Below, in pieces: positions 8,437-48,713 of a stretch of 64,000 bases of DNA. The notes under the pieces are model-generated. The model was not told the origin of the DNA. It did no database searches and worked only from the letters and a program-made list of their open reading frames with translations. Positions within the stretch are counted from its first letter, which is position 1, and each line of letters begins with the position of its first letter. A program made the position numbers and the translations under genes. This DNA is from Orbicella franksi (Eukaryota), in NCBI GenBank assembly GCA_964199315.1, contig OZ116712.1:20646001-20710000 (forward strand), given 5' to 3'.

Positions 8437-8900
8437 TGTTACACCGTGGTGCAGCAAGTGATCGTAAAATACAGACTTCTGCTTGCCCTGTTTCCTCTTT
8501 TATCACAAAGCCATTAATCTGGCTCACCCTGGAGGGTGTTTTTTTAATTTATTTTAAATCTCTGATTTTGAGTAGCCAAAAATAGGCTAGTATCTCTAAG
8601 AAAATTGAAATCAAAATTTTTGCAATATTGCATATTACAAAAAAGGTATCAACATGTGGCACAATTATTGCTTACAAAAATTATACTATTTGAAATAAAA
8701 CTAATATTCACTGTTTTCATACAGTTTTGTCTGTGGAAACTATTCTCCACACACCTTTCAATGGTCTACACCATTTTATGATAGTGAAACCACTCGCCTG
8801 CAGTACGTGCCTTCACTTGAAGTTTGAACATTTTATGTCTATTAAAGTGTACAGACCATGAAAAAAATGCCAATTTGTTAAACGTTATACTCAGAAGCTA

Positions 8901-10099
8901 TTACCACTCCTGATAAGGAGCCAAATAATCAAGGAAAACTGTGAGCTTCTCTCCTTGCTCAGCAAACATGGCCCAGAAAAAGGCTTTCTTGTAAATTTGT
9001 GAAGTGCTCCAAGGACGCCACATTTCATTATCACGTTGAAGATTTCTGGACTGTAGATATCTATGGTGAGGCTTTTATCATAAGCAGTTGGCAACTGCAG
9101 TGGGTGGCTATCTAGACGTTGAGTTTGAACTTTTATGATGAATTTCTGACGAGAGTTGCGTTTGAGTTTAGGTCCCTCTCCAATACCTTTTAAATGAGTG
9201 CCGAACGTTCGCATTGAGACTGTTCGTCCATCTGATTTGAAATAAGGAATAGTGTCGACTGTTACAGAATAGCGACCTTTGAGGGCAAAACATAATGTCT
9301 GATATGTGGGTCTGTGTTTACTTTGACATTCCTTACTGTAGTTAGATGCAATGTGACAATTGGAGCACATCATGAGGCGTTCTACGTCATTTCTTGAACG
9401 AGTGCAATACGTGCAGCCGCTGTAAAGTCGTGCACAAACTTCTATGGAATGATACTTGCCTTCTTCATTGTTAAATTCTTTGTTTCCATTGAGAATCGGA
9501 GGATTTGAATACAACTCGTTCTTTTCCCCTGGTGGAAGATAAAATTCAGACCGAGAATCGTACTCTCCAAACAATTGGCTATCAGTAAGAAAGATATCTT
9601 TGTTCCTTTGATATTCGAGCCAAGGGTCACTATGATCTCCAACAATGTTAGATTCCAGATAAACTCGTCCGGAAAAATTGACACTAATGAAAATGCCACT
9701 ACCTTTGTTGCCGGAAAGGACATTTCTTGCTATGTTAGCTGACGCTCGCGTTTTGGCGGGGAACCCCCAGAATCCATTCTCAAATATTTTGTTGTCGCTG
9801 ATCATGACTTGAGAATTAAAATCCAGAGAAAGACCAAAGGGTCTGCTGTGATGAATATGGTTGTTTCGTGTGAAATCGTGGTCTTGTTTTGGACAGCAAG
9901 AATACCTCTCTTGCATTTTCGAAAATCTCATTTCCATCAATACCACATTCTCCTGCATCTGGACCAATCAAGATGCCGTGAACACCACCGTCAAATATCC
10001 TGTTTTCAGACGCAGTAAATTCCTCACCATTTCTTGCTTCCAAACCACCCTGGTGGTTTCGGTACACTTCACATTTCCTCACTGATAATCGAGAGCCTT
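8901..10099 (-). pseudogene. Frameshifted 3' fragment (beta-helix, MYND, C-terminal domain) of the STAND gene family
   Basis: ORFs 9816-10082 and 8891-9967 align with the C-terminal ~400 aa of the two intact copies (CEVYRNHQGGLEAR, RPFGLSL, CTYCTR...CSNCHIAS, KFIIKVQTQ). There are several frameshifts, and the homologous GAGTGGTAA stop is at 8901-8903. Confidence 0.9.
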
Positions 10100-10368: not shown

Positions 10369-13300
10369 TTACCACTCTTGATAAGGAGCCAAGCGATCAA
10401 GGAAAACTGTCAGCTTCTCTCCTCTCTTAGCAAACATGGCCCAGAAGAAAACTTTTTTGCTTGTGAATTTGTGCAAAGCTCCAAGAACACCACATTCCAT
10501 TATCACGTTGAAAATTTCCGGACTTTGGATGTTGCAATCTATAGTGAGGCTTTTGTCGTAAACGGTCAGCAATTGCAATGGGTGGCTATTTAAAGTTTGC
10601 GTTTGAATCTTAACGATTAACTTCTTACTACTGTTACGCTTGGGTTTAGGACCCTCTCCAATACCTTTTAAATGAGTACCAAATGTTCGATGCGATACAT
10701 TTCCTGGCTCGACGCTAGGGATCATCTCCACTGTTACAGAAAAGCGACTTCTGAGGGCGGCACATAAAGTCTTATGTTTTGGTCTGTGTTTACGTCGACA
10801 TTCTTTGCAGCAGTAAGATGCAATGTGGCAATTCGGGCACTTAATAACGCGTTCTACTTCATCTCTTGAGCGGCGGCAATACGTGCATCCACTGTAACGT
10901 TGTTCAACAACCTCCCTGGGATGGTGCATGCCTTCTTCGTTATTAACTTCCTCGTTTCCGCTAAGAAATGGAGGAATGGAGTAACAGTCGTTCTCTCCCG
11001 ATGGAAAACCTAGAAGAGCAGCAACTTTGCTATCTATTGAGCTGCGATGAATGCGGAGATTATTGGCTTTGTCTTGATACTCAAGCCAAGGACCACAATG
11101 GTCTCGAACGATGTTTGATTCCAGATGAACTCTTCCAGAGTAATTGATACCAATGAAGATGCCACCACATTTGTTGCCAGTGATGACGTTTCCTACTACG
11201 TGTGCCGATGTTCGTGACTTAGCAAGTATCCCCCAGAATCCATTCTCGAATATCCTGTTATTACGAATCGTCATTTGAGAATTGTCATCCAGAGAAAGCC
11301 CGAAAGGTCTATTATGGTGAATATCGTTGTTGCATATCTCTATTTCGTTCGTAGTATGGAGGGCAAGAATGCCTTCTCTTTCATTTTCGAAGATCTTGTT
11401 ACCATCGATGTCACATTCCCCTGCATCTGGGCCAATCAAGATGCCGTGATAACCGTTGTCAAAGATCCTGTTTTCGGACGCAACAAGTTTCCCGCCTTCT
11501 CTTGCTTCTAAACCAGCCTGATGGTTCCTGTACACTTCACATTTTCTGATCAATAATCTAGCACCTTCGCCAGCAACTAGAGCGCCTCCACCCCCACAGT
11601 CACAAATGACACAGTTTTCAATCAGTGCAGAGCTCCCACATAACACCTGGACTCCAGGATAACCACCAATGCCAGACTTTGATTCTGAATCTCCGAACTT
11701 TCCTGTCCGATTACAAACAGGCTTCCCTAGAGAGGCTGCTATACATCCTGATCCTCCATTGCATTCTGGATAGTCGTCACAGCTTGTCTCTCCTCCTGAA
11801 ATGCTACAGTGGTTCATGTGAATAGATCCTTTGTCTCGACAGACCAACGGAACATTACCTTTGGGAAATGTGATATTTTCAAAATAACAACTTGCAAGGG
11901 TAACTGCGCAGCCTTTTGTACAATTCAAAACGGTCCTGGGCCCTAGACCTACAATCTGTACATCCGTAAAAATACCAAAAAGAGTTAAATTATACGCTCC
12001 CTCATGCAGTAGCATGGTCTCGTTTTCTTGCGTGGTCATCAAAGCAAATGCAAGTTGTGTTTCATTGCTTATCTCTCTGCAGCGAACTTCTGAAAGTTCT
12101 GGAAACCTCTTGCAAAATGTTTTGTCCAGACGGAGATTGTTATCAAAATGAACGGCCACTGCTAATGCTGCTCGTGCCTGCCCCGTGAGCTGAGTAGATC
12201 CACGTTTAACTAGTTCTTGGAGAGCCCAAGCCTTGCGTAGCAGCGCCTTGTCGTAGCATGGCGTCAAAGAAAGACACTGTTGACAGTCATCAAGAGCATT
12301 CTGTGGCTGGCCAAGCTTCAAATAGCAAAGAGCCCTGTTAGAGAACAGTCGATAGTCGCCTGACGATAAAGCAATGGCGCTGGAGTATAGATCTAATGCC
12401 TCTTCAAACTTCTTACTTTTTACTGCAAGGTTTCCCTTTTCTCTTAGCTGGTTGGCTTCCTCTTCCTTCTTATTTTGAGAGATGTCTACTTCAGCCATGT
12501 CGTGGTGTTTAGGAAGAGGCTGTCTCATACAACAAGATATCAGCTTGTAGTCCCTGTCTTTGAGTGGCATATCGATGAAATAAGGTGGCAAATTAGGATC
12601 TTCCTCTGAGGATGACCTTTCGAGGTTGACCAGGAACTCTAGTTTCATTTCTTGTATTGCTTGAGCCTTGACTTTCTCTTGAGAGACACTGAAAAATATC
12701 GCTGCCTCATTGAAGATGCGCACGGTTTCTTCTGTGTATAGCAAGGTGGGGACCGATTCCTGATGTTTGGTTGAGAAGGTGAGCAAATGCTCCTGCAAAT
12801 AAGTGGCATGCGAAGCCAACTTTCCCCACAGCTGTAACGAAGGAGGATTCTCTACACTAAAAACAGCGTCCTCAACAAAACGTTCGCACACTTCTGTAGG
12901 TGAACGTGTGTTGGCTAATGCGTAGTGAAGGACACGTACTGCACAAGTTAGAACGCCTAACTCAGTTTGTTCTTTCTTCATGTCACTTCGGATTACTTCT
13001 TGCACCAGACGATGTACACTAAAGGAATGTGTCCCATATCTTTGGAAAAGGGAGAACTTAGTAAGAAGAGACACTATCTCGGCCTGGTCACACAAATCGC
13101 CAATGGCTTCAGCATCATCTACTTTGTTGAGGCCTTCATTGATCACTTCATAAGGAATATCGTCGGGACCAAGAAAGGCGGACACTTTCATCACAAGAAT
13201 CGGAATTTCTCCAAGTTCCTTCTCTTTTGAGATTTGACTGATGTGGTCAAAATTCAGCAACCATGTAGTGTGGATAGCCAGGCGTTCACGTGAAGTGTTT

Positions 13301-16300
13301 TCTACCAGATTCCGGGCGTTACTCTTTTTCAAGAGAAGTAGCTTCTGCTCCCTATATTTCTTCATGTACTCTTTTATGGGTTGACGAAGACATCTTATAT
13401 AAGCTGCAGCTTGATCAAGAGCTAAAGGAAGCCCACCAAGCTCTCGTACCAGCTCACAAATCTCACTGTCGTTCTCTCCAGCTATTCCCGTTCGCATTCG
13501 CAGAAACTGAATCCCTTCTTCATCTGTCAAGCATTTTAACTCGATGCAAACGTTTTCTTCGATACCCGTTTCTTCTCCAATTTCCGTTGCTTCTCTCCTT
13601 GTGGTTATGATAATATGGCCATGCGCCGTTTGTTTCCAGTGGCCAGTGAGCAACTTTCGCATGTTCGCAGACATTTTAAGCTCGTCAAGATTGTCAACAA
13701 CCAAACACCACAACTTTTCGCGCCTTCTCAGCCAATCAAGAGTTCTTGACAAGGAATTAGAAAACTCTTTTTCAAGAGTTCCAATTTGGCGCGCCATCTC
13801 GCTGAGGGATATTTGAAAAAGATCGTTGTTCTCGCCTGAGATCCAAAAAATACCGCCTGGATATTCCTCCTTCTCTTTTTGACGCCAGAGCAACTCGACA
13901 GCAAGAGATGTTTTTCCTACACCTCCGAGACCGCAAATCGCTACTTCAGCACAACCCCTCTTGATGTTTTTCAGCTGCTCTGCTATTGCCTCTAGCTCGG
14001 TTTCGCGACCACAAAAGCAAGGATTGCGACTGGCTACTTGAAAAAATTCAACGTCGGCTGTTGCATTTATATTACTCTCTTCTAGAGCTTTAAGCCGAGA
14101 TTCTAACTGACTCTGCCCGATTTCTAGGTCCTCAACCTTCGAGGTTAGATTATCTTGTCCCTCTTTCAAAGACGTGACATCTGTCTCCAGGTCGCTCTGC
14201 CTTTCGTCTAACCGGGCAATGTTCCCTTCATTTGTATCTTGGCGTTTTTCAATGTTTGTTAAGCTGTTAGAAATATCTCCAATTGTACTTGACAAGACTT
14301 CGTTTTTTTCCAATTGCTCCTTTCGCTCTGCCTCCATTCGGCTTTCAATGTCGGTTATACGCTTATCAAATTTACTTATTTCATCTCCGACATCCTGAAA
14401 TGCTGTACTTATCTTCTTGGCTTCATCAGCACTTGATTTTTTGATGGCTTCGAGGTCCTGGTTTAGGGTAGTAACCTCGGCACTTACGAGGTTCATTAAA
14501 TCCTTATCCACTGGACATCCCATGCACAATATCATGCCTACCACGGAAATAAATAAATATGTCAGATACACGTACCATTTACTGTTGACAAGCAAAAAAT
14601 GACCGACTATTTAGCACGCCACAGGCTCGGATATGGAGGGTAACCTCATTCCACGTTTTGACACAAACAAACTGATTGACTGAATTGATTGAACACAAGT
14701 TTGTTCCATAAATCTAGTAGACGTACCAGTGTTGTAAGTAGTGTGAATCACAAAGTAAAAATTAAATCAATAAATCAATAAAACACTAGTTGAAATCAGT
14801 ATGCAGGTTGCCTTCAGGATAGGTTATTCCCAATAAAGAACAACGAAAGGGGCAGTGAGATGTTCTCAGGATCACTAGAAGATGGGCAAAACTCATTCAA
14901 ATTACTAACCCTTTGTTTCCCAGTCATGGAGATCATCAAGTTCTTTATCTTCATCAGCTTTTGGAAGCCCCAGTGAGCGAATCAGTGTTTCCATGAGCTG
15001 AAAACACTTTTGGAATTCTGACTCGGTCCAGTGGTCAAAGTTGCAATGGCCCCACTCATTTCTCACTTTGGCGCGTACATCCTTTGCATTGGTTTGAATG
15101 CGAGCATGAAAAACAGATGCATTCGACAGAATCCCTAGCACCGCTGACAGGTCGCACGTGTTATCAAACCCTGTAAAGAGACACTAAAATTAGTATTGCA
15201 TGGGTAAGCACTTCGCAGAAGAGTGTAACCCATACACAGTGGGGCATCCATTCTAAAGGGGTTGGTATGGAACAGAATTTGGGCGTATTTAAAAACGAAA
15301 TGGCAAAATGATGAAATGGCACCGCGGTTAGCCGAAACAGCACTCAGGTTAGCCTAAATATTGATCACTAACACGAACGAACATAGCCCTCATCCAAAAA
15401 TAGCCATAAAATTTCAGACTTCTTAGCGAATCCTGAAACTAACTAACTCGCCTGTATAAGTGTAACTGTCGCACCCAGCGTAGCAACTCAAACGCCACTT
15501 GATCCCCTTCACTCAGAAACAATCATTATGGCAACATCAGGCATTGCTAAATCCGAAAAGAACATGAACTGGTGTTGTATGAAATAATTATATAAGTCCA
15601 TGCAGTAAGCAAAACTGCACGTTTGCATCTGAGGACCAACGATTTCCGGATCTGGAGGACGTGGACTTCTTCTGGTTCAATGTGAGGAGCTCCTTATTGA
15701 TCGATTTCAGGGGAACAAGAATTACTTTCAAATAATTCTTCTCTAGAAGAGACACAATTGGCCATGGGCAGAAAATATCAGTTAGTTGGTTGGTAGTGAA
15801 AATCAAAAATTTTGCCAGCAACACAGTTGTTTAGAAGGAACAAGAATCACCAGTCAGCGCTCGATTCCACCAGTCTGTGATTATCCACAAGATAGCAGCA
15901 TGCCTGGTGGTGGGGGACTCCCATACAAAGAGGACGGGGTGCATGCTTGTCGTACCTTTTAGAGTTCAAAAAAGTGGTTTTGATATCTCTTAGGGTGGTC
16001 AGCCTCAAAAGGTCCACCGCGGGGACCCCCGCAGGTGCTTTTGCGGTATGTTTTCAAATTGATAGAGATTTAAGACAATGCTTTCACAAACTTTACGAGA
16101 AGGTATTCAAAGCAATTGTTTTTATTGCAACAATTTCTGAAAATTATGAAAGTGTGAGTTAATGTGTTGTTTTAGAATTAGTACCTCTCAGGGGTGAAAA
16201 AATTTCAGGCTATGCCCACAAAACAGGTGCGTGGTACCTTGGTAACAAAATTTTGGACAAGCAGCCCTGTTCTTTCTATATGGGAGATTCCCCCAGGCAG

Positions 16301-17319
16301 CATATTGTCTCACCTGTGAACTTAGCCATATGTGGTTCAAGGTACAGTTTAGCCAGATCTACATCTGTGGTAACTTTATAATCATACAAATGTTCCTTTT
16401 TCTTGAACCTTCCCCAGTTGTTGTTGATGCTACTGTAATTCAACTTAAATGATCCATCGTGAGTTAACTGGGAACCAAAGACTTGAGTGTCAATTTTATT
16501 AGAGCCCTTTAGTGATGTATAGTGTTTGGAAATTTCTTGACCAGTAAAATCGCGGAGAACTGGTAGAAGAAGCCTGTTCAGGCAAATGCCGATCACAACC
16601 CATCTCTTCTGCTTGTCTCCAAGGTCAAAGCTGCTGACTGCAAAAATTAAATTTAAAAAAACAAACAAAAAGATTAGACATACAAGGGTGGAATCATCAG
16701 GGAATTGAAGTCTTATCAATCAGTCAATCCTAGCAGTGGCTGTTGATTCACCAATGTATTCAAGTGTCAATCATGTCGTAAAATCTCTTTTGCAAAAGAC
16801 TCCTAAAAAAGCTCCCAAACTGTAAACTTCCCAAGCCATAAAAATGTATCAGTAAGTTTATATTATTAAAGCTACTTGTTAAGTTCTCCCCATTCAATAT
16901 CACCCTTTGGATCAAGATGGCTTGTTGCAAAAATCATGTTCAACCACAATACAATAGGCCATTTCCATATAATTTCTCAATATTGGACCGGAACTAGCTT
17001 GCAAATGAAGCTAATGTGGGGGCTCTTTTGAAATGTAAATTACATTTAATCTCTTTTTAATGATTTATTCCCCTACATGAGCCTCCAACGCAAGCTAGTT
17101 CCAGTCGAATACCAAGAATACAAATATGGCCTATTCTGAGACCCCGTCAGTGTGTATTGTACATACATGTGAGCCTCAAATGCTACTTCAATCTAGTCAT
17201 TAGTGCTTACCTGGTCCGGCTGCAGCTGATGGTGCAGATAGAATTATGGGGGCTGCAGAAGGCCCTGGAAGTGTTGTTGGCATAAATGAGATTATTCTGT
17301 GGCCCCCACCTGTTGCCAT
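10369..17319 (-). CDS. NLR-like STAND NTPase copy 1, 1620 aa: HEPN-like, coiled coil, NB-ARC, TPR, parallel beta-helix, MYND, C-terminal domain. Coding exons 17211-17319, 16314-16637, 14910-15170, 10369-14537.
   Basis: Start is MATGGGH. Three phase-1 GT-AG introns join the exons to 4863 nt with no stop. Motifs: RNEWGH (15046-15063); FFQVASRNPCFCGRETEL; Walker A GLGGVGKT; Walker B WCLVVDNLDE; GHIIITTR; GGLPLAL; VHRLVQ; TPR (EKGNLAV...FSNRALCYLKLG); repeated I..N.I..N...G beta-helix units; MYND (CTYC...CPNC...YCCKEC...H...C). Confidence 0.92.
15903..16296. mobile_element. MITE-like element in intron 2 of STAND copy 1
   Basis: Imperfect TIRs CCTGGTGGTGGGGGACTCCCATACAAAG...GGGTGC and GCCCTGTTCTTTCTATATGGGAGATTCCCCCAGG. 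A related remnant lies at ~47345-47706. Confidence 0.55.
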
Positions 17320-18049
17320 GCCAGCCTAAAATTAAATGTGCATCTGTCTTCAGTATAAAGTCTGGAAACCCCTATCTAGCTGCAGCTAGCATAGCACACT
17401 GTGTATTGCTAATGTGAATAGAGCTAAATTTATGCCTGTAATCAATGACTTCAGGTGCTCTTTCATCTTACATTGAATTATCAGCTAACCAGAGCACATG
17501 AAAAAAGATTAAAAAGGCTGGTTAAATATGCATTTTTACATAACTGCAGAAATTCTTGCCTGCTCATTGGCTAATTTTCATTTACAGACACAAGAATTTA
17601 TAAGTTTGGTGATAATTGATTGACATCAGTTTTTCAAACCTCTGTCCTGTTATTGACAAGGAATTTTGTCATAACATTGTCAACACAGTCTGTGGATCCA
17701 CTTGCCTGTCACCTCATGGATCCACAACTACTTTGACAATGTTATGATGAAAATATAAATGATTAATAACAGGACAGACACATGAAAAACTGACATCAAT
17801 TTTTTTAAAATTACCACATATCCTTGGTTATCAATTCCCCCTTCTTATTTGCCCATCTGTTTTAGGCTATGTGATCTAGATCTGTCCTTTCAACATACAA
17901 CAATGATGTGTATGTTTATTTCCGGTTTTAAGCCTCGCCCACAAGGGATATATGTCCTCCCCACATCTACCTTTAAAGGGCTTTTTGTGATACTCATCTC
18001 CTTGTGTGGTTAGAAGAGCAGTCATTTCCACAGCTTATATGTATTATTA

Positions 18050-18456: not shown

Positions 18457-20637
18457 TCTAATATTACAGTTTTCCTGTCATTTATTCATGTTCAGAAAAA
18501 GTAAGAAAATAAATGTAGTGTTCATACAATGTTTGGTTGGTTTGCATTAGGCAGGGGTTGGATATTCAAAATAATAATGTAAATTAAAATTTAAAGCTGT
18601 CAACATCCTCATGTTCCCACAGAGTGCTTAAAATTGAGAAATAAATTCAATGCATGCTTTAAATTCTGAGCCAAACTGTTTTCAGAGATCAAAATTCCGA
18701 ACTATGATCTCCACCCTACATTTTTCTCATGTGGACCCAGATGAAAAATTATGTTGATTCTTGCTCTTATTTGGAACCCCAAAAGCTTTAGAAGTGAAAA
18801 TTTTTCAATCATGTTAATCAATCACTAGCACAATTCAGTTATTGTTCACATCTGTTTATATAAAGATCTATTTCTGCCTTTTTGACAACAGAATATCAGC
18901 CTAATCATTGAACAACTGGGAATAGATAAATCATAATCTGGTGGATAAGAGTTGACAGAAGACACTATGTTACCTAGTGGATAGTGATTTGTCATTCCTC
19001 CTTTGAACAAGCATTAATTGGCCAGTAGTTTGGATTTCAGAATTTTGCTGACGTCACATGAAATTCGTTCGAACAATCAAACTGAATCAAATGCTTCATA
19101 AAGGTTCTAATGGCTAGAATATTGCCACAATTGTAACGATGAAAAGCAAGATTCTGGCTTTTACTTTTCTTTCACTGATTTTCTATTTTTTCCACTTCAG
19201 CTTTTGTAGATTGATTGTGCTCTAGTGTTGGTTTCTTGCGGATTCCGCCATTTTGACTGCTTCCGGGATTCATGTTTTGTTAAATTTATATAACCCGAAA
19301 TTGAAAACGTCCACTTAACTGTACTTGAGATAAAAGCAGTCGAACAGAATCTAACGACACGAAGTGCACTATTATTTTACCGAAAAATCGTGCATTTCAC
19401 TATCTTTTGCTCCAATAATTTAGCTTATGAATTAATTGATGTAAGCTTACTTTTCCTGTTACGTTGCTGCAAATATCATCTCTAAGCTTACCTCTCGTTT
19501 AAAATGTTACGCTTAACAGTAAAGAATGACTCGATTAGTTGTTAATTCCGTTTTCCACCTGCAATTCGCCAAGAAAACAGTTTTCAAAAGCAACATAAAA
19601 TGAGAGACGAATCTCGACTTAGCTGATTCGAAGAACTCGACAAATGTTGATTCCCGGAAAAAATAGAATTCCCGGAAAAATATAAATCGATGAACTGGCA
19701 TGGAGTGACGGGTGAATTGAACGGAGGAATATAGCTACGGAAGCGAAAAATTTGTATTTCTTTGACAACTTTCACAATTAATGGTTCATGAAAGGGCTGA
19801 AAAAATATTGAAGTAAAATCTGGAAAAGGTAAAGCCGTGCCGACATTTCACACAGATTCTGCGCGAACCTGAGGAGTCCTCCATTAGCTAGTACATTTCT
19901 ATTTCCTGTTGTCTTCAAATCCACATGACCAGCACAAAATCGGAATAGAGATTATTTCTGCTTAATTGTTTGTAATTACTAACTGTAACTGGTCTTTTCT
20001 TAATTTTTTTTGACGTGAAAAAATCTTATTTTGTGATATCTGTGCAGACGCTTTGGCCACGCAAGACACTTGACATTCCACCGTTCAACGTTCCTCGTCA
20101 ACCTGGCCCAGCTTCCAAAATTTCTTGTTTCTCTGACGAACCCTTCCTCTCTTTCCAGGAAAAGGGAATTACCACCTAGCACATTTTTGAGTTTTTATCG
20201 TTCGTTACAAACATCTAAAAAGTGATAATAGATTCAATCTTCATGACGCGTTGATTCTCTGAGAGATTTTTTATGAACATTACATGGATGTTGCCTAGTT
20301 CATAGACCTCTATATTTCGCCGCGATCAATCGTTTCGGATCACGTGATCCGGGACAAAACATGTGAAGGCTTGGAAGAAAGCCGCACAGGAACTAGGTAA
20401 ACATGCGGAGTGTACGTACTATTTGGCTGACATAGGATGAGTAGTTTGTCATTTAATATTTCAGTCAAGTCTCTGAAACAGAATATTCCTCTTTTCACGG
20501 AACAGACTTATCTTCAGGAAAAAACTGTTAAATACTGAGAGGCTTATGTTGCTTTAAAAACACCTGCGTTAACCTAAATTAAAAGTTTATTTTCGACAGC
20601 TGTATTTTGTCTGTATTTTTATAATGCTATTTTTTAG

Positions 20638-20701
20638 GAGTTTCTGTCACGCTAAGTTTAAGAGTTTCTGTCACGCTAAGTTTAGGAGTTTCTGTCACGC
20701 A
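20638..20701. repeat. 23-bp minisatellite (GAGTTTCTGTCACGCTAAGTTTA)
   Basis: About 3 copies here and about 4 copies at the paralogous site ~51615-51705. Confidence 0.85.
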
Positions 20702-21789
20702 AGGTTTCAATTTATGCTTTTTCATTTGAATACTTCACTGGTGGTATTAGGCCTCTAAATATTGGGTTAAAACGACAAGAAAAAGAGAAAGGAGCACTAC
20801 GAAGCCAGATTGAACTCAGATTATGTTTTCCCTGAGCTAAGGGAAACCAGCCTCCAAACGTTTCAGAGCATGCGGGGACAACCCCAATGTCATAGCTTCC
20901 ATTGGAATTAAAGGTGAATTAAAAATGTTGAAGAATGAAGGGAATTAAACAGTCGTTGAATACAGTCGAAAGATGATAAGCTGTGTTAAGCGGCCTCTAA
21001 TGACGGTTACAATAAAAACCCTGAAGCCTTTTTTTTGAAATAATTACGACTCGTTTTTAATAAAACCACAACTACATTGAAGACAATAATTATTGAGCTC
21101 GAACTTCGTGCTCAGTGTGATTTAAATATCGTGGGATATTGGGCTCTTTATACAGAATCTCAATCAGACTCATTTTCTAAGTTAGTGTTGGATTCCTTCT
21201 CGTATTTCGCGCGTTCGTTCGCCATTGCCAGTTGTCTCATGTTCAACAGACACCCTGCGGCAGCCTCTTGTAAGCCAGCATCTTCTGAGCCAACCATCTC
21301 CAGCAACAGCTGAAAAGGTAAAATAGATAAGGGGCTGATAAACTGATCATCAGTCGATTGACTGCGTGGTTGATTATCGATTGATTGATTGATTTGTTTA
21401 TTGGTTGATTGTTGAATCAGTCCACTATAATATCAGTATACACGATATAACAACAAATTCTCACAACTACATTAAAAGATACGTATGGCGATTGGTAAGG
21501 AGAGTTGATATCTCGAGCTTGGAAGCATTACCTTGACAACTCCGCTGCGGTGCATTGTGATACAACTGTCAGGGTTTTTCCCAAGCTGCTCAAGAGCCCG
21601 CATTGCAGACCGCTGTACTATAATGTCATGTGACGCCAGGTACTCTACCATGGGCTTCACTGCGCCTTCCTCAGAGAATCTTTTGGCGTTGTTGCCCCAT
21701 TTACTGCACATGGCGATGGCTTCAGCAAGATGACGCCTTAGAACTATATCAGTCTGAACATGGAAATAGAAAGCTGTTAATTCCTGAAA

Positions 21790-22500
21790 AAAATACTGAC
21801 TGCATCGGCGGGAAAGTGGAACACTTCGCCATTTATCAACTTGAAGTTGATACAAAATTTTAAATCGTATCGTGTTCACAAATGAAAAATTATATCGTCT
21901 TGGTAGAGTTGATTCATCAAACTTCGCTTTCTGTCATGATGAAGATGAGTCCATCGGGCATTTACTTTTCTTCTGCACGAGATCTGCCGAGGTTTGGAAA
22001 CACGTCTTGTCCTGGGTACGAGACAAGAATATCTATGTTGGAACTTTGACCGAAACAGATCTGATTTTTGGAAAATTTGACGAGAATTATATCTTGATCA
22101 ATCACATCTTGTTTCTAGGCAAATATTATAATTCTTCTAGGAAGTGTATGAGTTGATTGCCTTCTTTTCGTGGTTTTATTGCCACAGCAGGACGCATATA
22201 TATATATATTTAAGCTCCACTGACATCGCTAGGAAAAGAGACAAGATACTTCCCAACTTAAAGCTTATTCATGCTTTTTTAATGGTTTTTTTCTAATTAG
22301 TCATACCGTAACTTTATTATTTTGTCTTCGGTAATCGTAACCCCTTAATATTGTATTATTCTGCTGTAGTCGCGCCTTGAATTGTGTGTGTGTTTGAGAG
22401 TGATAGTGAATTATCATTTGCTCGATTATGTTATGTATTTGCTTTCTTTTGCTTCTTATTAAGAAGTTTGTAAGAATTTTTAATGCTGCTGTTTTTCTTC
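21790..22500 (+). mobile_element. 3' fragment of an L1/Tx1-type LINE (zf-RVT region), intronic
   Basis: Translates to [24 protein letters not shown](F/C)[17 protein letters not shown]...W...[12 protein letters not shown], the zinc-binding region downstream of the RT in non-LTR elements. Paralog at ~52810-53560. Confidence 0.7.
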
Positions 22501-23321
22501 TCTTTTTTCCCTAAAAACTACTAAAAGACAAAACAAAACTTGAAGTTAATAGAAGTAGATTTACCAGCCGCAGTATAACGGGTCTGTGAAGCTGTAAAGC
22601 TAATGAGAGCTCGGCTATAAGATAAAATTTCAGCCCATTTCTGATCTATAATTCCTGTTATTGTCACCAGTAGGCCTGATTGACAAGCGCCTCGCCAACG
22701 TACTGTTGCTGCGATGCAATGTAACTGACGCAGCTGATGTTCTTACCTTATGTGTGAGGTGCGCCAAGTGACGAACAACCTCGTAATCTGTGATCACTCC
22801 TAAATTCTCTGGATCACACGCCACTATTGATATCACTGCGCAAGCGCTGGTCAGGACCTGAAATATTTGTAAACGTGTGTTAGTGAAGAGGGCGTTAGGT
22901 TAGCTTTTTTGTTTGTGTGTGTAAATAATAATAAATAAACAAATAATGAAAGTATTTCATTTTAGGAATAAGGACAGTCAGGATGGTCAATAAAACTCTT
23001 GCCTTAATGTTCCTGGTGTGATTTCATCCTGGAATTAAATATGCGTATTGATGTTTTGATATCAACAATAATGTATAAAATATCAAGCGGCATACAAGTG
23101 TACTTACTTCCAAATCATCAGATTTGAGCAAGCGAACAGTCAGATCCAGGCCCCCTACAAAGGATCGGGCGGTTTCCCAGGCTTCCTACAAGCAAAACCT
23201 CTTGTAAGGTAAATTAATAGCATTGTGTGACAAAAAAGTGTTAATGTATGTTTTTCGAGATCTTGATGATATCATACTGCGCATTCAACTCGAACAGCAA
23301 TCTTTTGTAGTAAAGTAATTG

Positions 23322-23502
23322 TAGGACTACGAGTAGTTCTTTTTTCGCTTGGTCCGTCGAGCGAGACCGTAAATAAACCGCGAGGAAAAAATGGCCTCTC
23401 GCACGCTTCTCGCTCTCAGGATCTCCCGCGGCCATTTTTTTTCTTGCGGGAAGTCGCGTTACGCGCGACGGACTAGGCGAAAGGGGGACTACTCGTAGTC
23501 TA
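23322..23502. mobile_element. MITE with TAG...CTA termini
   Basis: TAGGACTACGAGTAGT ... ACTACTCGTAGTCTA inverted ends. Paralog at ~54312-54492, and a related element at ~31745-31893. Confidence 0.65.
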
Positions 23503-23542
23503 AGTGACTGTAAGCCACGGCCGCTCTTCTACACGTCCTTAA

Positions 23543-23989
23543 GGTCATTCCCCAGTATTGCATTGCGCATCCCTACTGTGCATAATTTCACGCGTGATTA
23601 GCGCGCGCGCATTAAAAAATGGCGCATTTTTCTTTACGGCTGGACCTAGCCATAGAGGTAAATCGTCATTTTCTCCCAAACGAGTATGGTGACCTATAAT
23701 TTTTTTCTGGTTTTTTTTTTTTTTAACTGAGTAATAAATTTCTCTGTGTAAAATAAATGTGGACCAATTCTCAGTGTAGAGCAAAAAACAATCGTCGGAA
23801 ACGTGAATTTAACAAGCAATCGTGCTATTATAAGGATTTATTGGGTATAAAAAAGGTGCTGTTGCTCCTAAACGAACATGGGGACCCCTCATTTTTATCT
23901 CAAAATTTAAGTTCCTACAATATAAACAATCAATAGGCAAAGTTATACAAAAATCTCTGTGCAAGTTCAATAATTTCAGTGGAATGACC
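23543..23989. mobile_element. Non-autonomous TTAA-specific TIR element (Kolobok-like)
   Basis: TTAA|GGTCATTCC ... GGAATGACC|TTAA. Paralog at 54534-55015. GG termini with a TTAA TSD fit Kolobok better than piggyBac (CC termini). Confidence 0.75.
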
Positions 23990-26289
23990 TTAAGTAAAGG
24001 TCATCTACAACAAAGTAGTTAAATTTATGTCCACCTCAGAAATTATAATTAAATTATTCACCTAGAGTACCCAAAGAACACAACAGTTAGGTAACATAGA
24101 AGTTATTTCATACCGGTGTGTCTTGCATTAGTCTGTAAACGGCCCAGGTTGCCCCAGCAACTACCTGTAAATTAGAAAAATACGTCGTGTTATTCACATC
24201 AGTTGTACACTCAGCCTTGACTGTAAATTGCACATTTTGTTTTGACTGACAGGCTGAACTATTAGCAAAACTTCGACTTGCCCTGTTGTTTCTTGACTTC
24301 ATAAGCGACCATAGTAGTCTTAGTCCTTCAAGCCTGTTGAAAACTCTGGAAACCATAAATAAAGCAATAACTGCAATTGTAAGGCGTCAGTCCAGGGCTT
24401 GGATTAAAACAGTGACTTTGCCATGCGCCAGGAGTACCCTAGACAGTTAAAATGCTCCTCACACACGATAACTGTTTGCATAAACCCATTCCTCTCCCCT
24501 ATTTTATTATAAAACGTTCCATCAACTTTCCAACTACTTACAACTTTCCATCAACTTTTCAACTACTTACGCACGACAGTTACTATTCACAGCGCATGCT
24601 GCAATGGCTCTTGCCGCTGTTCCAGTGAGCTCTTCATTTGGAATGTTTAAGATGTCCACAAGTGTCTTACAGCCTTTGCACCGTAATACTTCCAATGGAA
24701 CTTTAGGATCTTTGGCAATTTCTTCAATGGCTCCAACAACATGGAGTTGAACCTTGGTTGAACATCAAAATCAGAGAATTAAAATCAGGGATCGTTTAGT
24801 TTCCTTCCATGGTCACATCCAAGTCTGTTTTTGGGTACCCAACAGTGTTGGCAAAATAAATTAATGCATCAAGGAAAGTTCAACCACGTTTTATAACGGA
24901 TAAAGTTGTGTGAACAACAGCAGCCATTTCCATATACACTGACTGCACGCATCCAATTCAACTGAATACTTCGCGCGAATGAATCCGCGAAACGTTTTAC
25001 ATTTATTTCTTTATGTCACCTTTGCTAATTATTTATTTACTCACATCGTAATTTCTATAAATATGCCTTGAGTTATTTTTGATTTATTCATTTGACAATG
25101 ATGACACGAAGTCGTTGCTTTGCGTTCGCTAATTTTACTTAAATTTTTTTCGAAATCGCTTTTTGTTATAACAAACAAATCAAATATAACGGGTCCAAAT
25201 CGCATTCATCCGGAAGTCCTTTCAATACTAACTTGCTCAGGAAGTTCGTCTCCGCCCTCGTCTCCCTGGAGAAGCCAGATAAGGGTCTCCAAAGCCTTGA
25301 CCTCCATTAGTCTGGCAAAAAAAATCAACAAAAAGCAAATAACAATTAAAAGAAAAATAAACAAATGCTTTACACATAGGTACTGGAGATGGCTGTGAGT
25401 CCGATACAACACGTACGTGCTATCTGGTTTCTGTTTCTTTCATTACTTAAAATATACTTTCTTGACGTGAGCCTTCAATAACTTCCTTCGACCATGTTTA
25501 TCACAGTCTAAACCACTGAAGTGCATGCACACTCGCCTTCTAACATTGTATTCGCTGATTGCACATTTCCACATAGCACCGGTCACAGCCGCCAACAGCT
25601 TCTTGTTATCTTGGCGGGAAAGAAGTGAGACGAGTGTGCCTAGGGCCCCGAAGTCATATACAGCCTTTCTTGTCTGTTCGTTCACGGCACACTGCCAAGT
25701 AATTGGTAAAAAGCACTCAGAGGTCTTTAAGCGACGGTACGGTTCGTATTAAAGTCGTACCTCCGTTAACGGAGATACTATAAACAAGCACTGCACTTGG
25801 TAGCCTCTAATAAGCAGATATTTCTGCTAATTTGCTCTTTTTTCGGGCCCCAATCGTTTCTGACAGCACGCACGACTGTTCGTTTTTTTGTTTCGTGTTG
25901 CGTTTAAATTTTAGTTCCCACTCAACCACATGTTGTAAACAGTTGTATCCATAGACAAGTGACGCTTACTTTTAAATCCAAATGGCATATTCGAGCTTTC
26001 CCCGCTTTTGGCGAATTAAGTGTTTTCCCGCACTTGGCTCGGGATGCGGATTACACGCTTTTTTATGGGACTTTTGATTGGTCCGTTGTCTTAATCCTTG
26101 TGTATGCTAGGAGTGATTTTAATTTAACGAGAGCCAATTAAAAAATAAACTTACCAATTAAACCAATCAACTAGTTTAAAAACGTTATTTTACCTTGAAT
26201 ATCGCATTGGCACAGTAACCCTGAAGCTCCTCATTGTCTGTTACCAAGCGCTGCACTATTGCCGTTATCATACTTTCCTTCAAACCCTC

Positions 26290-26405
26290 GGCGCAAGGAC
26301 GAAACCAATCGCAATCTCAACATACTTGTAATGTTAGGTCCGGGATTCAGCCCAGACCACATTGATGGAAGGCGAGCGCTCTCACCTTCGCACCATCCCT
26401 ACCTT
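26290..26405 (-). mobile_element. tRNA-derived SINE head, truncated by the deletion
   Basis: Minus strand AGGGATGGTGCGAAGGTGAGAGCGCTCGCCTTCCATCAATGTGGTCTGGGCTGAATCCCGG shows degenerate A/B-box-like features. A longer copy lies at ~57400-57630. Confidence 0.55.
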
Positions 26406-26667
26406 CAAAAATACTCTATCATATAAAACCTGCTTCGCTTTACGACTGCTTCTTTCTAAAGAACTGCAGATTCGCAATCCTTAAATAACTTGCGTGGCCA
26501 GGCTCAGACTTATTCTTGGGCAAACAACACAAAGAAGTGGGGTTGAGACTCAAGAAGAGAATTTTGTGTTTAAAAATGGAAAAAGTGTAGTCAGGAGATG
26601 TCATAAGGTCTATGGAAAAAGGTTTGCCACTGACTTATGTTGGTATGAAATAACTTCTACTGCTTAA

Positions 26668-28023: not shown

Positions 28024-28379
28024 CAGAAATTATAGAGCAGGAGCTGGGACCTAATGATGCGTGAAGGCGGTGCGCAGAAAATGTTGAATGAATATTGCAC
28101 CGTGTTGAACCAATATTTCGATCGTGAATGTGAATGAATATAAACCGTTGAATGTGAATGAATACATCCCGTAAATGTGAGTAAAGATATTCGTAAATAC
28201 GAAATACGTCGTTAAATGTGAATTAATATATTTCTTGAATATAAATTTAGTTGTTGAATGTGAATAAATATATTCGTGAATAATAATAACAACATTAAAT
28301 GTGAATGAATATAAACTTTGTGAATTTTGCACCATTTCGCCAACCATATCAAAGGCCACGGGATAACATGTATTGCGTG

Positions 28380-28781
28380 ATTACCAGAAGAAAACAGTGT
28401 AAGCATGTCTGTCTGGAAGAGATAGATGTGTTTGTTCCTGCGCCAAGCGGAGCTGGGAAAAAGTTTGACTTTATAGCTCCATATTCGTTTGATTGTTTGA
28501 ATGGAGATCAAGCGAATAGCAACTCCATCGTCCTGGTGGTGGTTCCGCTAATTTCCCTGATGAAAGATCAGGTCTCTAACCTAAATTTCCGTGGAATTCC
28601 AGCTTCCTATGTAGGAGACGATTGTTCTGAACAACAGATACAGGATATTTTAGATCTTAAAGTTAAACTGGTATTTGGAAGTCCGGAGGCGATTCTAAAC
28701 AACTATCGCCACATTTTTCGTCGATTGAAAAGCAATTTAAAATGCGTCTTCGTCGACGAAAGTCATTGTATAGCTAAATAG
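28380..28781 (+). pseudogene. RecQ-like superfamily 2 helicase fragment, probably transposon-borne
   Basis: DVFVPAPSGAGKK (degenerate motif I), IVLVVVPLISLMKDQV (motif Ia), VKLVFGSPE, CVFVDESHCIAK (motif II), followed by a GTGAGT donor. No flanking exons were found, and it is embedded in repeats. Confidence 0.75.
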
Positions 28782-32738: not shown

Positions 32739-35459
32739 GAAAAAAAAAAAAAAAACAAAGTTTTAAAGAAAAAAATCCCCCAAAAAATCAAATCGTTTAT
32801 AAGATAATAATAAATAAAAGATAAAAGTGGAAGACTAAAATATGTTAAATAAAAATAAGAATCCTGAATTTGACGCAATGACATGTTAATTACAGAGAAT
32901 GACAAGAGGTCTTTTAAAAAGCCACATAACCGCTTAATTTACGACGAAATTAAATTGTAATGAATAGGCATATGTAGTTATATTTGAACGTTAGTTGGCT
33001 CGAAGCTTGCGTGAACCTCCCATTCTCGTTTTTAAAATTGTTGTTCGTATCAGTAGCTAATTCTCGGCTACATTTTCGTGTCAGATGTGAGCGTTACAGT
33101 TAGCGTTACAGTTAATGAGAAAGCTTATGTACGAAAACTTACGGACATGGCTTGCTTTAAAGGAGCTACGTCACGATTTGCGCGCCTTGAAAAAACTAGC
33201 CTAGTTTTTCAAGTTCGTCATTTGCAGTCCTCGTTAATCTTTGCCATCCTTAACGATCCTCATTTCGTTTTGATTTGTTCTTGCCTCTTAAGTGTTTTTT
33301 ATCCTAGAACACGATCATTTTAAGGTTTTATTCGATTTAAAGGCAACTCTTTACGACCCTAAAAATGACTCTAAAAATCTTGACGTAACTCCTAAAATGT
33401 TGTTTTTTCTCGGGTTGCGTTATCGTTCACACTATCGATGTTGTTCCTATAAACAGCTATATTTCCTTGAAATACAAATGGTTTGTTTCGTTTTATTCCA
33501 GTGCGAGATATCGTATTCCAAACTCTCATCTTGCAAAAGTATAGACTTGTCTCAAAAACGGAAATAGTTTGAAATCATCAGGTGTTTAATTTTTTTAGTG
33601 TTTTTAGTTTTTGTTTCGATTCATACGTTCGTCCTATTATCACCATGCTGATTCGTTTTATGACAGTTTACCATTGATGCAAGTGAATATATGAAATATC
33701 AACAGTAGTGTATCTTTGTTTCATGTAGCTCCTTCAGCAGTGCAGACCAGGTGATGACACAAAACATGATGCTTCAGAAGTCAGTGAGGAGGTTTTCACT
33801 CAGTCAATTAGTATCATGGGTGAGAAAGTGAGGCAGAGAGCTGAAGCCAGTAAACACCCATTTGCGATTACTCAACCTGTGACTTTTTCAGAAGAAATGT
33901 TAAGACAGTTTGATTCCTTTCCAATGCCAGAGGAATTTCTCTCATAGCTCATGGATACTTACCTGAGAATTCTATACTACAAGCATTTCCTGAAATACAA
34001 AATTTATTGTTATCTGACATTCTTTGGCTTTGTGAGGAAAATTTACTCAAAAATCCTTGTTTTTTGAAGGAGTACTTCTCCTGTCTGTGGCTTTGTGTGG
34101 TTATGAATCAGGGGGAAAAGTTTCTGAGGAAAGTTTCAAAGTTCAAAAGACTCATGGGCATCACAAACTTAATTCACTATATTGGAAAGGCTGAACCTCA
34201 TAGCCTTCCGTCTGAAACACCCATTGAGTTTGATAAGAATTACAGCAGCTGGCTTCATCTTTTGTATTACTACAAGGCGGCAATTTACACTATTGCTGAA
34301 GCTGCTGGAAAAGTGGCTGAAGCTTTTGAGAATTCCCTTAAATGCTGCCCATCTTATTGTGACTCCAAAAGGGGACTTGGGTATAACTTAATGAGGCTTT
34401 GCACTACAACTTTGAAATGCGATCAAGATGAACCTGTACAGTTGCCACCTAAATTTTATGAACAAAAAAACTTTTGACAGAAAAATGTCAAAATATGATT
34501 CTTGGACTACAAAAAAATTGAGAGACACTACAGTAAAAGTGTTGCAAGAGTACCTGGTGGAGGCACCACAGTGTGTTAAAAACTACCCAAATGCTTGTTA
34601 TAATCTTGCATACTGTGCTGTAGTAGACAAAAACATGAGTGAATTAAGTATTATGAACTTGGCCAAGATGCAGAAGAACAGAGACTTTCTTTCTTTGGTC
34701 CTGTTGATCTGCCTATGAAAGTTATGTTGTCTCCATTCTACCAACTTTTTGCTAATGTAAAGCAACGTGTTAGTTGTGGCAACAAGGCTTGCACCAAGAA
34801 AGTTAAGGAGAGTGACTTAAAATCCTGCTCCCACTGTGGGAAACAAAAATAATGCAGCAAGTGAGTAGAGAGCTTGAAATTAAGAGCAGAAAATATCCAT
34901 GGCTGCTTTAATTTATTATATTTCATTTTCTACTGTATTCCTAACAATTTCCATGATATGATACCAGAATTTCATTCAGTATAGAACATACCCTCTGTGA
35001 TTAGATTAAGAGCTAGTTAGCTGTGTTAGTTTCTGACAAATCAACTGCCTGGTCAGTTTCTAATTTCCCCTTGGTGACTGAGGTGTGCCACTCAGAAGCC
35101 CCTCAACAAATATGTTACCTCCTGGCTGTGACATAGAAATGTTACTTATTAACAAGTGTTACTCTGAGTTCTTCCTGGTCCACTTTTTTTTGTTTTGTGG
35201 GTGGGAAGGGGCGAGGTGGACGTTTTTTGTTGGTTTAAGTTAATCAATGTTGCTTTCTTTGGCCTTCAACTTTTCATGTTGCAGAGACACTCCACTGACT
35301 TTCTGCCTCCTCTGGTGGGGTTTGTCGAACTCTTGGGGAACATTTTAAAGGTTTCACCAGATCTGTTACAAGGATGTATCATAAACTAAAGAAAGGAGAA
35401 CTTATTTAATAATAAAGTGTATTATCGTTTGTCTCACGATGTAGTCACTTGAGATGTAG

Positions 35460-35503
35460 ATCGCGACGTTTCGACTGCTTACTGCTAGTCTTCTTCAGGC
35501 GAT
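35460..35503 (-). ncRNA. Minimal type I hammerhead ribozyme (PLE-associated)
   Basis: Reverse complement of the motif at 36615-36658. Confidence 0.8.
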
Positions 35504-36614
35504 AAGGTCGACTGATTGCACGGTATCATTTATATCACAAAGGTCGGCTGTGATTGGTGCATTTCGATCCTCCTATTGTTCCATTGTTCCGGCGAGTAGC
35601 TGTTCCGTCAGTGGTCCGCTGTTGTACCGTTCTCCTGCTGTTGTGTTTCTTGATCGTGGGTATCCATGCTTCAGGAATTTCAATTCCACTGTCCCTGTTG
35701 ATGTTGTTAGGGTGAAGTCTTATGTGAATAGCTTCCTTGACCCTACGTGTGTACCAGTGAGGATCTCGATCAATAAACTTGACCTCATTCCAGATAGGAT
35801 AGTGGCCGGTCTCGTGGGTATGTTCAGAAACGGCGGAGGTCTGGGTACGGGCGAGTCGTATATCCCTGTCGTGTTCTTTGATCCTCTCCTGCATAGATCT
35901 CCCTGTTTCCCCGATGTAGACTTTGCCGCACTCACAGGGAATCCTGTAGACAACACCATCTTGTTTAGCCGGGTTGACGGGTGTCCTTTGGTCGCACTAA
36001 GTGTGACCGAAGTGTCGTGTCGGACTTAAAGACGGTGCGAATGCCTTGTTGTTCTAGGCAGCGGCGGAGAGACTCCGAAGCTCCTTGGACATAAGGTAAA
36101 ACGACGGTGGATTTAAATTCCGCGACAGGCTCTCTTCTTGGGGTTGTTCGTGCCTTTGTGATCTTCTGTACAAAAGAGGAGGGATATCCGTTAGAAACAA
36201 GTACAAATGACAGATGTTTTTTCTCTCCAGCGATTACTGATGGTTTGGTGACGAGACGTTTAGCCCGGTCGTACAGAGAGAAGAAACATCTGTCATTTGT
36301 ATTTGTACTTGTCCACTATCCTATCTGGAATGAGGTCAAGTTTATTGATCGAGATCCTCACTGGTACACACGTAGGGTCAAGGAAGCTATTCACATAAGA
36401 CTTCACCCTAACAACATCAACAGGGACAGTGGAATTGAAATTCCTGAAGCATGGATACCCACGATCAAGAAACACAACAACAGGAGAACGGTACAACAGC
36501 GGACCACTGACGGAACAGCTACTCGCCGGAACAATGGAACAATAGGAGGATCGAAATGCACCAATCACAGCCGACCTTTGTGATATAAATGATACCGTGC
36601 AATCAGTCGACCTT

Positions 36615-36658
36615 ATCGCCTGAAGAAGACTAGCAGTAAGCAGTCGAAACGTCGCGAT
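36615..36658 (+). ncRNA. Minimal type I hammerhead ribozyme (PLE-associated)
   Basis: ATCGC (stem I), CTGAAGA core, A, GACT..AGTC (stem II), GAA, palindromic ACGT (stem III), C17 (GTC cleavage triplet), GCGAT (stem I'). Confidence 0.8.
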
Positions 36659-47500: not shown

Positions 47501-48713
47501 AGTCACAGCAAGATGGTATTCGAAGAAATTGTCTTTATCACTATTCAAAACATTGTGAAAGTGTGAGTTAATGTGTTGTTTTATAATTGGTACCTCAAAG
47601 GGTGAAAAAAAATTAAGCCACACCCACAAAACAAGCTCTTGGTACCTTGGTAACAGAATTTCCAATGAGCACTCCTGTCCTTTTATAAACGAGTCCCACC
47701 CCCCAGGCAACATATTGTCTCACCTGTAAACTTAGCCATGTGTGGTTCAAGGTACAGTTTAGCCAGATCTACATCTGTGGTAACTTTGTAATCATATGAA
47801 CTTTCCTTTCTCTTGAACTTCCTCAAGTTGTTGTTGATGCTACTGTAATTCAACTTAAAAGATCCATCATGAGTTAACTGGGAACCAAAGACTTGAGTGT
47901 CAATTCTATTTAAGCTCTTTAGCGATGCATAGTGTTTGGAAATTTCTTGACTGGTAAAATCGCGAAGAACTGGTAGAAGAAGCCTGTTCAGGCAAATACC
48001 GATCACAACCCATCTCTTCTGCTTGTCTCCAAGATAAAAGCTGCTGACTACGAATATAAAGTAAGAAAAAACACAAACCAAAAGATTAGACATGCAAGAC
48101 ACATACATAATACCAATCAGTCAATTCTAGCAGTGGCCGACTGGATTCACCAAGTATTCAAGTAAAAATCATGACTTTGTGGTAGGATATATGTTTCCCT
48201 TGAAAAAGCACCCAAATTGTAAACATCCCAAGTCATAAAAATGCATCAGTACAAGTTTATTACAGTCACTAATGCCCAGTTCTTCTCATTAGATATTGCC
48301 CTTTGGATCATGATAGTTTGTTACAAAAATCATGTTGAAACAGAAGACAATAGACCATTTTCATGTTCTCGGTATTGCTCTGGAACTAGCTTGTAATGTA
48401 ATTGAGGGTAATGGAGGGAGTCTTTTTGAATGCAAATGACATTAATCTCTTTTTCATGATATTCCCCTGCACAGGCCTCCATTGTGAGCTAGTTCCAGTC
48501 CAATACTGAGAATACAAATATGGCCTATTCTGAGACCCTGTCAGTGTATATTGCACATACATGTGAGCCTTAAATGTCACTTCAATCTAGTCATTAGTGC
48601 TTACCTGGCCCGGCTGCAGCTGATGGTGCAGATAGAATTATGGGGGCTGCAGAAGGCCCTGGAGGTGTTGTTGGCACACATGAGATTATGCTGTGGCCCC
48701 CACCTGTTGCCAT
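41579..48713 (-). CDS. NLR-like STAND NTPase copy 2, 1619 aa, same architecture as copy 1. Coding exons 48605-48713, 47724-48047, 46083-46343, 41579-45744.
   Basis: Exon sizes 109/324/261/4166 nt, all introns phase 1, frame open throughout. RNEWGH at 46219-46236; GLGGVGKT, LVVDNLDE, GLPLAL, VHRLVQ, TPR, beta-helix and MYND (CTYC...CSNC...YCSKEC...H...C) are all retained. Confidence 0.92.

Follow-up and report, generated by a model that had tools for sequence, protein, structure and literature searches.

Gene structure and transcription

We analysed a 64,000-nucleotide stretch of the genome of the coral Orbicella franksi (assembly GCA_964199315.1, contig OZ116712.1, positions 20,646,001 to 20,710,000; hereafter the window, to which all positions refer). 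Its minus strand carries a gene, copy A, and an intact tandem paralog, copy B, each encoding a predicted protein with an N-terminal HEPN domain, a NB-ARC STAND NTPase core, a TPR module, a parallel beta-helix and a MYND zinc finger. A preliminary description of this DNA, made from its letters and a list of open reading frames (ORFs), had taken the ORF of 1408 codons at 10369-14595 (-) to be the last exon of a gene with three further phase-1 exons upstream. Copy A comprises four coding exons (-). Exon 1 (17319-17211, 109 nt, ATG at 17319) encodes a Pro/Ala-rich N-terminal tail of 36 residues, exon 2 (16637-16314, 324 nt) the first half of the HEPN domain with its long first helix and an insert, exon 3 (15170-14910, 261 nt) the second half, and exon 4 (14537-10372, to 10369 with the stop codon) the remaining 1388 residues. 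The limits of the HEPN domain within exon 2 were set by an alignment (A3) and an AlphaFold2 (AF2) model. All introns are GT-AG and phase 1, and the spliced product of 1620 amino acids (aa) contains no internal stop.

Copy A is transcribed and spliced as modelled. Between 26 and 43% of the sequence words of 14300-17400 were present in 14 RNA runs, approximately the exon share of this interval. Contigs assembled from two metatranscriptome and two polyA RNA-seq runs were aligned to 14300-17500 and contained the joints 14536/7-14909/10 (three of the four runs), 15169/70-16313/4 (all four) and 16637-17211 (three). These joints show CT..AC on the plus strand, i.e. GT..AG on the gene strand, and coincide with the predicted introns. 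The RNA contigs are 95-99% identical to the window and thus derive from other individuals or alleles. The residues at all three joints are also identical in the NCBI models of Oculina, Stylophora and Desmophyllum; among named proteins, the closest come from Oculina patagonica (79% identity), Desmophyllum pertusum and Stylophora pistillata.

Contigs of two runs (X1 and X2) extend past 17327 with letters identical to 19494-19520, which places the 3' end of a non-coding 5' exon at 19492-19520 (-). The intron (19491-17326) has the donor AG|GTAAGC after 19492 and the acceptor ttttag|GCTGG. Because the transcript runs into this exon, the gene extends beyond its earlier end coordinate 17319. The preliminary coding model of four exons is therefore upheld by the open frame and by RNA across each of its junctions, while the span of 10369-17319 proposed for the gene fell short by one non-coding exon reaching 19492.

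In each of the four RNA runs the summed depth was very high over two stretches of intron, 15905-16225 and 17082-17188, where many contigs continue into dissimilar sequence; these stretches probably represent dispersed repeats transcribed elsewhere. One polyA run (X13) contained an extra joint in intron 2 (15176-15458, -) that skips 281 bases and lacks GT-AG ends; it could reflect an alternative form or an artefact of the contig.

Paralogs at the locus

Copy B (41579-48713, -) has the same four coding exons (48713-48605, 48047-47724, 46343-46083 and 45744-41582) in an open frame of 1619 aa, as anticipated in the preliminary description, and the sequence of the 5' exon recurs at 50506-50532. The two copies form a tandem duplication with a unit of about 31.2 kb. 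Their proteins are 84% identical, with a ratio of nonsynonymous to synonymous substitution rates (dN/dS) of 0.28 overall and 0.23 in the HEPN domain; both copies are under purifying selection. The beta-helix is the most constrained part (dN/dS 0.18), unlike a fast-evolving recognition surface, and the linker between beta-helix and MYND finger is 47% identical between the copies. When 10372-17319 was compared with 41582-48713, synonymous divergence (dS) was 0.15-0.23 over the part that starts with the HEPN domain and ends with the helical region, and 0.36-1.05 from the TPR onwards up to the C-terminus. Such an increase along the gene points to gene conversion affecting its 5' half or to a mosaic origin. 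The upstream regions 18460-26569, which contains the 5' non-coding exon, and 49470-57806 are approximately 92-93% alike over 7.7 kb; the coding exons are approximately 85% alike.

Directly downstream of copy A lies a degenerate third-copy fragment (8894-9967, -) comprising the end of the beta-helix (Pfam Beta_helix, 5.4e-12), a MYND finger with two cysteines replaced and the C-terminal domain. It shares 63% identity with copy A over 299 aa, although at the DNA level it resembles copy B (83.8%) more than copy A (74.3%). Tandem duplication together with a decayed third copy indicates birth-and-death evolution. The genome holds two intact genes and one fragment at this locus and a distant pair on another contig; exon 3 alone has at least 21 matches in the genome.

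The N-terminal HEPN domain

The preliminary description had read the motif R-N-E-W-G-H in the upstream exons as the Rx4-6H signature of HEPN RNases. This motif, with a polar residue after the arginine, is present in both copies, encoded at 15046-15063 (-) in copy A (R181-H186) and at 46219-46236 (-) in copy B, with 0 chance matches expected in either case. Pfam found no HEPN match in the small exons taken singly or in the N-terminal 240-260 residues of five full-length homologues from corals, in which the sole trace was a weak DUF4559 match of the Desmophyllum homologue (E 0.01). A profile built from six coral N-termini retrieved 496 cluster representatives at E <= 0.001, and 87 of these, each run singly against Pfam, made up the family scan and alignment. 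PF18731 (HEPN_Swt1) was matched by 46 of the 87 members (best E 6.6e-6) and PF15112 (DUF4559, the CXorf38 family) by 37 (best E 1.6e-7). Profile similarity to a recognised HEPN family is hence present for the family and absent for the protein and its closest homologues taken singly; since Pfam was silent on the five N-termini, the link to HEPN came solely from scanning the 87 members. At least 90% of them conserve each of the motif residues R, N, W and H, and the RNxWxH site is nearly invariant across cnidarian, mollusc and amphioxus members. A minority of members in some ESM Atlas clusters carry a DZIP3 label; a DZIP3-type HEPN identity was ruled out, as PF18738 (HEPN_DZIP3) was matched by a single member of the 87 (E 0.014).

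The AF2 model of the domain, computed from the 87-sequence alignment, has a predicted local distance difference test score of 95.6. Foldseek against Swiss-Prot models returned human and mouse CXorf38 as best matches (template modelling (TM) score 0.65, probability 1.0), spanning residues 14-197 at 16% sequence identity to human CXorf38, followed by weak matches to Csm6 and SWT1. Foldseek of the model against the PDB gave nothing significant, and PDB sequence searches with profiles of the domain gave nothing usable. Numbered as in the model, R148 is close to the end of a helix (134-152), H153 opens the following loop, the next helix comprises 161-177, and the insert 51-118. This agrees with the description of HEPN domains, in which the arginine stands at a helix end and the histidine at the start of the following loop (PMC3710099). 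No Cys/His cluster that could form a zinc ribbon was found in the insert; cysteines between residues 37 and 232 occur at 55, 150, 187 and 200 only. A predicted HEPN homodimer, run without controls, scored 0.01, which speaks neither for nor against pairing. From the family matches, the conserved motif and the predicted fold we assign the N-terminal domain to the CXorf38/Swt1 clade of HEPN domains, and its motif suggests that it may be catalytic. CXorf38 has been placed in a Swt1-like HEPN clade and listed as 'Active', and its family, which in cnidarians and cephalochordates includes NACHT and DEATH fusions, has been predicted to act as a defence RNase (PMC3710099). The literature yielded no demonstrated activity for human CXorf38.

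Switch core and TPR module

Between the HEPN and NB-ARC domains lie about 158 residues (14026-14499, -) with weak Pfam matches to HMMR_N, LIP-1 and TACC_C; these matches and the composition point to a putative coiled coil. The NB-ARC NTPase follows at 13348-14007 (-; Pfam 4.7e-11) with the Walker A motif GLGGVGKT (K440) at 13909-13932 (-). DUF7779 at 12967-13191 (-; Pfam 4.3e-8) ends in the MHD-like S-V-H-R (H740). The motifs GLGGVGKT, LVVDNLDE, IIITTRR, GGLPLAL and SVHRLVQ are intact in both copies, so that Walker A and B, TTR/sensor, GLPL and MHD-like elements and the winged-helix region of an NB-ARC-type STAND protein are all present. A strict NLR has NACHT and leucine-rich repeats (LRRs). 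Here the NACHT match is weak and below cut-off (E 0.0018), Pfam detected no LRRs, and the predicted protein is 'NLR-like' only.

The TPR module (12241-12471, -; TPR_1 8.2e-11) consists of three repeats of the carboxylate-clamp type. Its closest solved relatives in a PDB sequence search were SPAG1 (1.6e-33) and STIP1/Hop (1.5e-30), followed by RPAP3, SGTA, CHIP, PP5, Tom70 and SGT1; E values to the TPR domains of Hop/STIP1, SPAG1, RPAP3, SGTA and CHIP range from 1e-33 to 1e-9. All five clamp positions of Hsp70/Hsp90-tail TPRs are occupied (R930, N934, N965, K995 and R999), and four of the five are invariant from corals to molluscs. They align with the clamp of Hop TPR1, namely K8, N12, N43, K73 and R77 (numbers after Scheufler et al. 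2000). Compared with that clamp, the first lysine is an arginine in the coral protein and the last arginine is a tryptophan in mollusc members. The most probable role of the TPR is to bind the C-terminal Hsp70 or Hsp90 tail and not to sense a ligand. A long sensor array was ruled out on the grounds of the single three-repeat module and its PDB relatives. The preliminary description had counted the TPR among the sensor parts of the protein, which did not stand; its assignments of a HEPN domain and an NB-ARC STAND core were corroborated, as were those of the C-terminal domains described below.

Beta-helix, MYND finger and C-terminus

A right-handed parallel beta-helix of FBXO11/CASH type is encoded at 11077-12021 (-) and matches both Pfam Beta_helix (PF13229, 4e-27) and NosD (PF05048, 2.4e-13). 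It is modelled confidently by AF2 with approximately 12 coils of three strands each. Foldseek against the PDB returned alginate epimerases and lyases, including AlgE4 (E 2.5e-7) and AlgG, and the top row of the ESM Atlas search was F-box only protein 11 (FBXO11). The MYND zinc finger at 10762-10887 (-; PF01753) was matched at 1.4e-6 on the ORF and at 2.3e-8 on the excised piece. Its Cys/His ligand pattern (C437, C440, C453, C456, C462, C466, H470, H474 and C478 in the numbering of alignment A4) is invariant among 22 sequences. The protein ends in a conserved domain of about 125 residues (10372-10746, -; ...LAPYQEW). The C-terminal 129 residues matched no Pfam family and had no look-alike in the Atlas. 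This domain is conserved to Nematostella, amphioxus and Mya; AF2 predicts, at moderate confidence, that it folds into a small alpha/beta unit. Identity over the whole tail is 48% to Nematostella, 34% to amphioxus and 31% to Mya.

Distribution and comparison with known systems

The phyletic range given here rests on named homologue matches. The full architecture occurs in other corals, in Nematostella (XP_048576061, 1582 aa), in the bivalve Mya arenaria (XP_052810411, 1649 aa; NB-ARC model not among the listed matches, Pfam E 1e-4) and at the second locus of the O. franksi genome, where the HEPN domain is encoded in one exon. The predicted architecture is thus conserved from cnidarians to a bivalve. 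An amphioxus relative with a HEPN-NACHT-beta-helix-MYND arrangement is auto-named 'FBXO11', and others are auto-named 'STI1-like', 'SGTA' or 'MYND-type domain-containing'. The RefSeq and UniProt entries with the exact architecture are uncharacterised; given such names, the architecture is catalogued but mislabelled. No paper combining NB-ARC, MYND and beta-helix was found in a literature search that covered journals outside subscription, and the full architecture appears to be undescribed in papers. The preliminary description had considered the whole arrangement new. This applies to the C-terminal combination, for which no characterised description was found, and not to the presence of the architecture in databases or to the HEPN-STAND fusion. 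HEPN domains fused to STAND NTPases have been known from cnidarians since 2013 (PMC3710099; later PMC8260672, PMC8662601, PMC10236652), in agreement with the earlier remark that HEPN-tipped NLR-like proteins had been noted there.

The partners of the same HEPN domain were surveyed by Pfam on long homologues and by the names in the source records. It heads NACHT-LRR proteins in amphioxus, nSTAND3-ankyrin proteins in Mytilus and other NB-ARC-TPR proteins, and it sits C-terminally behind Roc-COR in the anemones Actinia and Exaiptasia. A position at one end of varied switch proteins is the typical placement of an effector domain, and HEPN-type effector modules have been described in invertebrate STAND families (PMC8260672, PMC8662601, PMC10236652, PMC8195603).

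The best structural match, CXorf38/DUF4559 (human Q8TB03), shares the RNxxxH motif, and its family includes NACHT fusions. The coral protein differs in having NB-ARC in place of NACHT, an insert without the zinc ribbon listed for CXorf38 (PMC3710099) and no double-stranded RNA-binding domain. The DZIP3-like-HEPN NLRs of anthozoans (PMC8260672, PMC10236652) likewise carry a HEPN head on a STAND core, are expanded in the same animals and embody the same idea of an RNase-armed receptor, but their HEPN belongs to another clade and is joined to NACHT with LRRs or WD40 rather than to NB-ARC, clamp TPR, beta-helix and MYND. In RNase L, the working analogy (PMC3710099), a repeat sensor controls the pairing of KEN-type HEPN domains and thereby RNA cleavage; unlike the coral protein, RNase L combines ankyrin repeats with a pseudokinase and a circularly permuted HEPN, is activated by 2-5A and has no STAND NTPase. 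Bacterial HEPN-STAND-TPR proteins (Npun_F6454, Table 1 of PMC3710099) and Avs-type STAND proteins, compared by architecture, share the order of N-terminal nuclease, STAND and C-terminal repeats as well as oligomerisation after the sensor binds its ligand. They are prokaryotic and have long TPR sensor arrays, and lack the beta-helix, MYND finger and EEVD clamp. FBXO11, a substrate receptor with a CASH/beta-helix domain, comes closest in shape among animal beta-helices (360 residues aligned, TM 0.52), whereas the coral protein has neither F-box nor UBR finger and is not part of a ubiquitin ligase.

Other features

Three further features of the window have no link to the HEPN genes: an ORF with four Sel1 repeats (1426-2223, +; E 6e-34), an ORF encoding the beginning of a DEAD/DEAH helicase domain (28305-28781, +; E 2e-12) and a 398-bp inverted repeat with 99.5% identity (35408-35805 and 36313-36710). 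Contigs C1-C13 of the genome (G000) contain approximately 20 or more ORFs of exactly 1582 aa with a MYND-like stretch (34% identity to the MYND finger described here), four of them about 60 kb apart on C7 (5921418-6102535). These ORFs look like a high-copy element or a tandem array.

Putative mode of action

The reading we favour, at slightly better than even confidence, is that this transcribed gene of five exons (four coding) and its tandem twin encode cytosolic NB-ARC STAND proteins whose HEPN heads cut RNA upon oligomerisation. In the resting state the NB-ARC module would be held off. Once the C-terminal module of FBXO11-like beta-helix, MYND finger and terminal domain receives a signal, nucleotide-dependent oligomerisation would follow and join the HEPN heads via the coiled-coil neck. 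Cleavage of RNA by the paired HEPN sites could be the result, as it is in RNase L, Cas13 and Csm6. The three-repeat TPR would probably dock an Hsp70 or Hsp90 C-terminal tail. We infer HEPN catalysis, activation by oligomerisation, chaperone docking and a role in immunity; an RNase output and an immune role seem reasonable.

That the upstream exons are foreign to the large ORF, or that the gene is a pseudogene, is extremely improbable. Apart from the silence of Pfam on the small exons taken singly we found nothing in its favour, and it is already refuted by the three junctions in RNA contigs of several runs; frames open over 1620 and 1619 codons, the same junction residues in the models of three other corals and the overall dN/dS of 0.28 likewise contradict it. 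Function of the HEPN domain leaves more room for doubt. It might bind RNA or nucleotides, or serve as a pairing or adaptor module, in a protein that acts as a scaffold or RNA sensor and whose output is made by partners recruited through the MYND finger, the TPR or the coiled coil. The several protein-protein interaction modules (TPR, MYND) would fit such a role, HEPN-NLRs have been suggested to be RNA sensors (PMC8662601), and the HEPN domain of the closest solved relative, yeast Swt1, is held to be inactive and RNA-sensing (PMC3710099). However, inactive HEPN lineages typically lose the motif and the CXorf38 family is listed as 'Active' (PMC3710099), and here the arginine, polar asparagine and histidine hardly vary among the 87 members, which come from cnidarians, molluscs and amphioxus. 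We regard a non-nuclease HEPN domain as unlikely, at about one chance in a handful.

It appears just as unlikely that the protein is no immune receptor but a conserved factor of housekeeping or stress that couples chaperones to the quality control of RNA or protein, with the TPR clamp on Hsp70/Hsp90 and an endogenous client recognised by the FBXO11-like beta-helix and MYND finger. This reading would account for the co-chaperone type of the TPR, the resemblance of the beta-helix to that of a substrate receptor, the small number of genes (two intact and a fragment here, a distant pair elsewhere in the genome), an architecture kept from cnidarians to a bivalve, and purifying selection on the whole protein that is strongest on the beta-helix. 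It accords less well with the occurrence of the same HEPN domain in expanded invertebrate families of NACHT-LRR, ankyrin-STAND and Roc-COR proteins, with the birth-and-death pattern of duplication and decay at the locus, or with the patch between beta-helix and MYND finger that is only 47% identical between paralogs. More speculative still, and in our estimate rather improbable, is a chaperone-gated RNase switch older than the split of cnidarians and bilaterians, in which Hsp70 or Hsp90 on the clamp TPR would hold the off state, and loss of the chaperone (during proteotoxic stress or infection) or a conserved ligand bound by the FBXO11-like beta-helix, MYND finger and terminal module would set off oligomerisation and RNA cleavage. 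Such a switch would be a single-chain animal counterpart of the HSP90-SGT1 control of plant NLRs.

The tail is no generic repeat sensor: the joint retention in more than one phylum of a TPR for chaperone docking, a beta-helix like that of FBXO11 and a MYND finger points to a specific and conserved partner, and away from a changing range of ligands from pathogens. Among the immune-type proteins predicted in corals, anemones, molluscs and amphioxus, those with a HEPN-tipped STAND architecture rank with the most common, and in the literature examined no tested RNase activity is reported for them or for human CXorf38. With its RNA-confirmed exons, two intact and constrained copies, conserved motif and Nematostella orthologue, the gene described here is a clean candidate for an RNase test. 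If the RNase reading is true, RNA destruction regulated by a nucleotide switch, as in bacteria and RNase L, would also be an output of animal STAND proteins.

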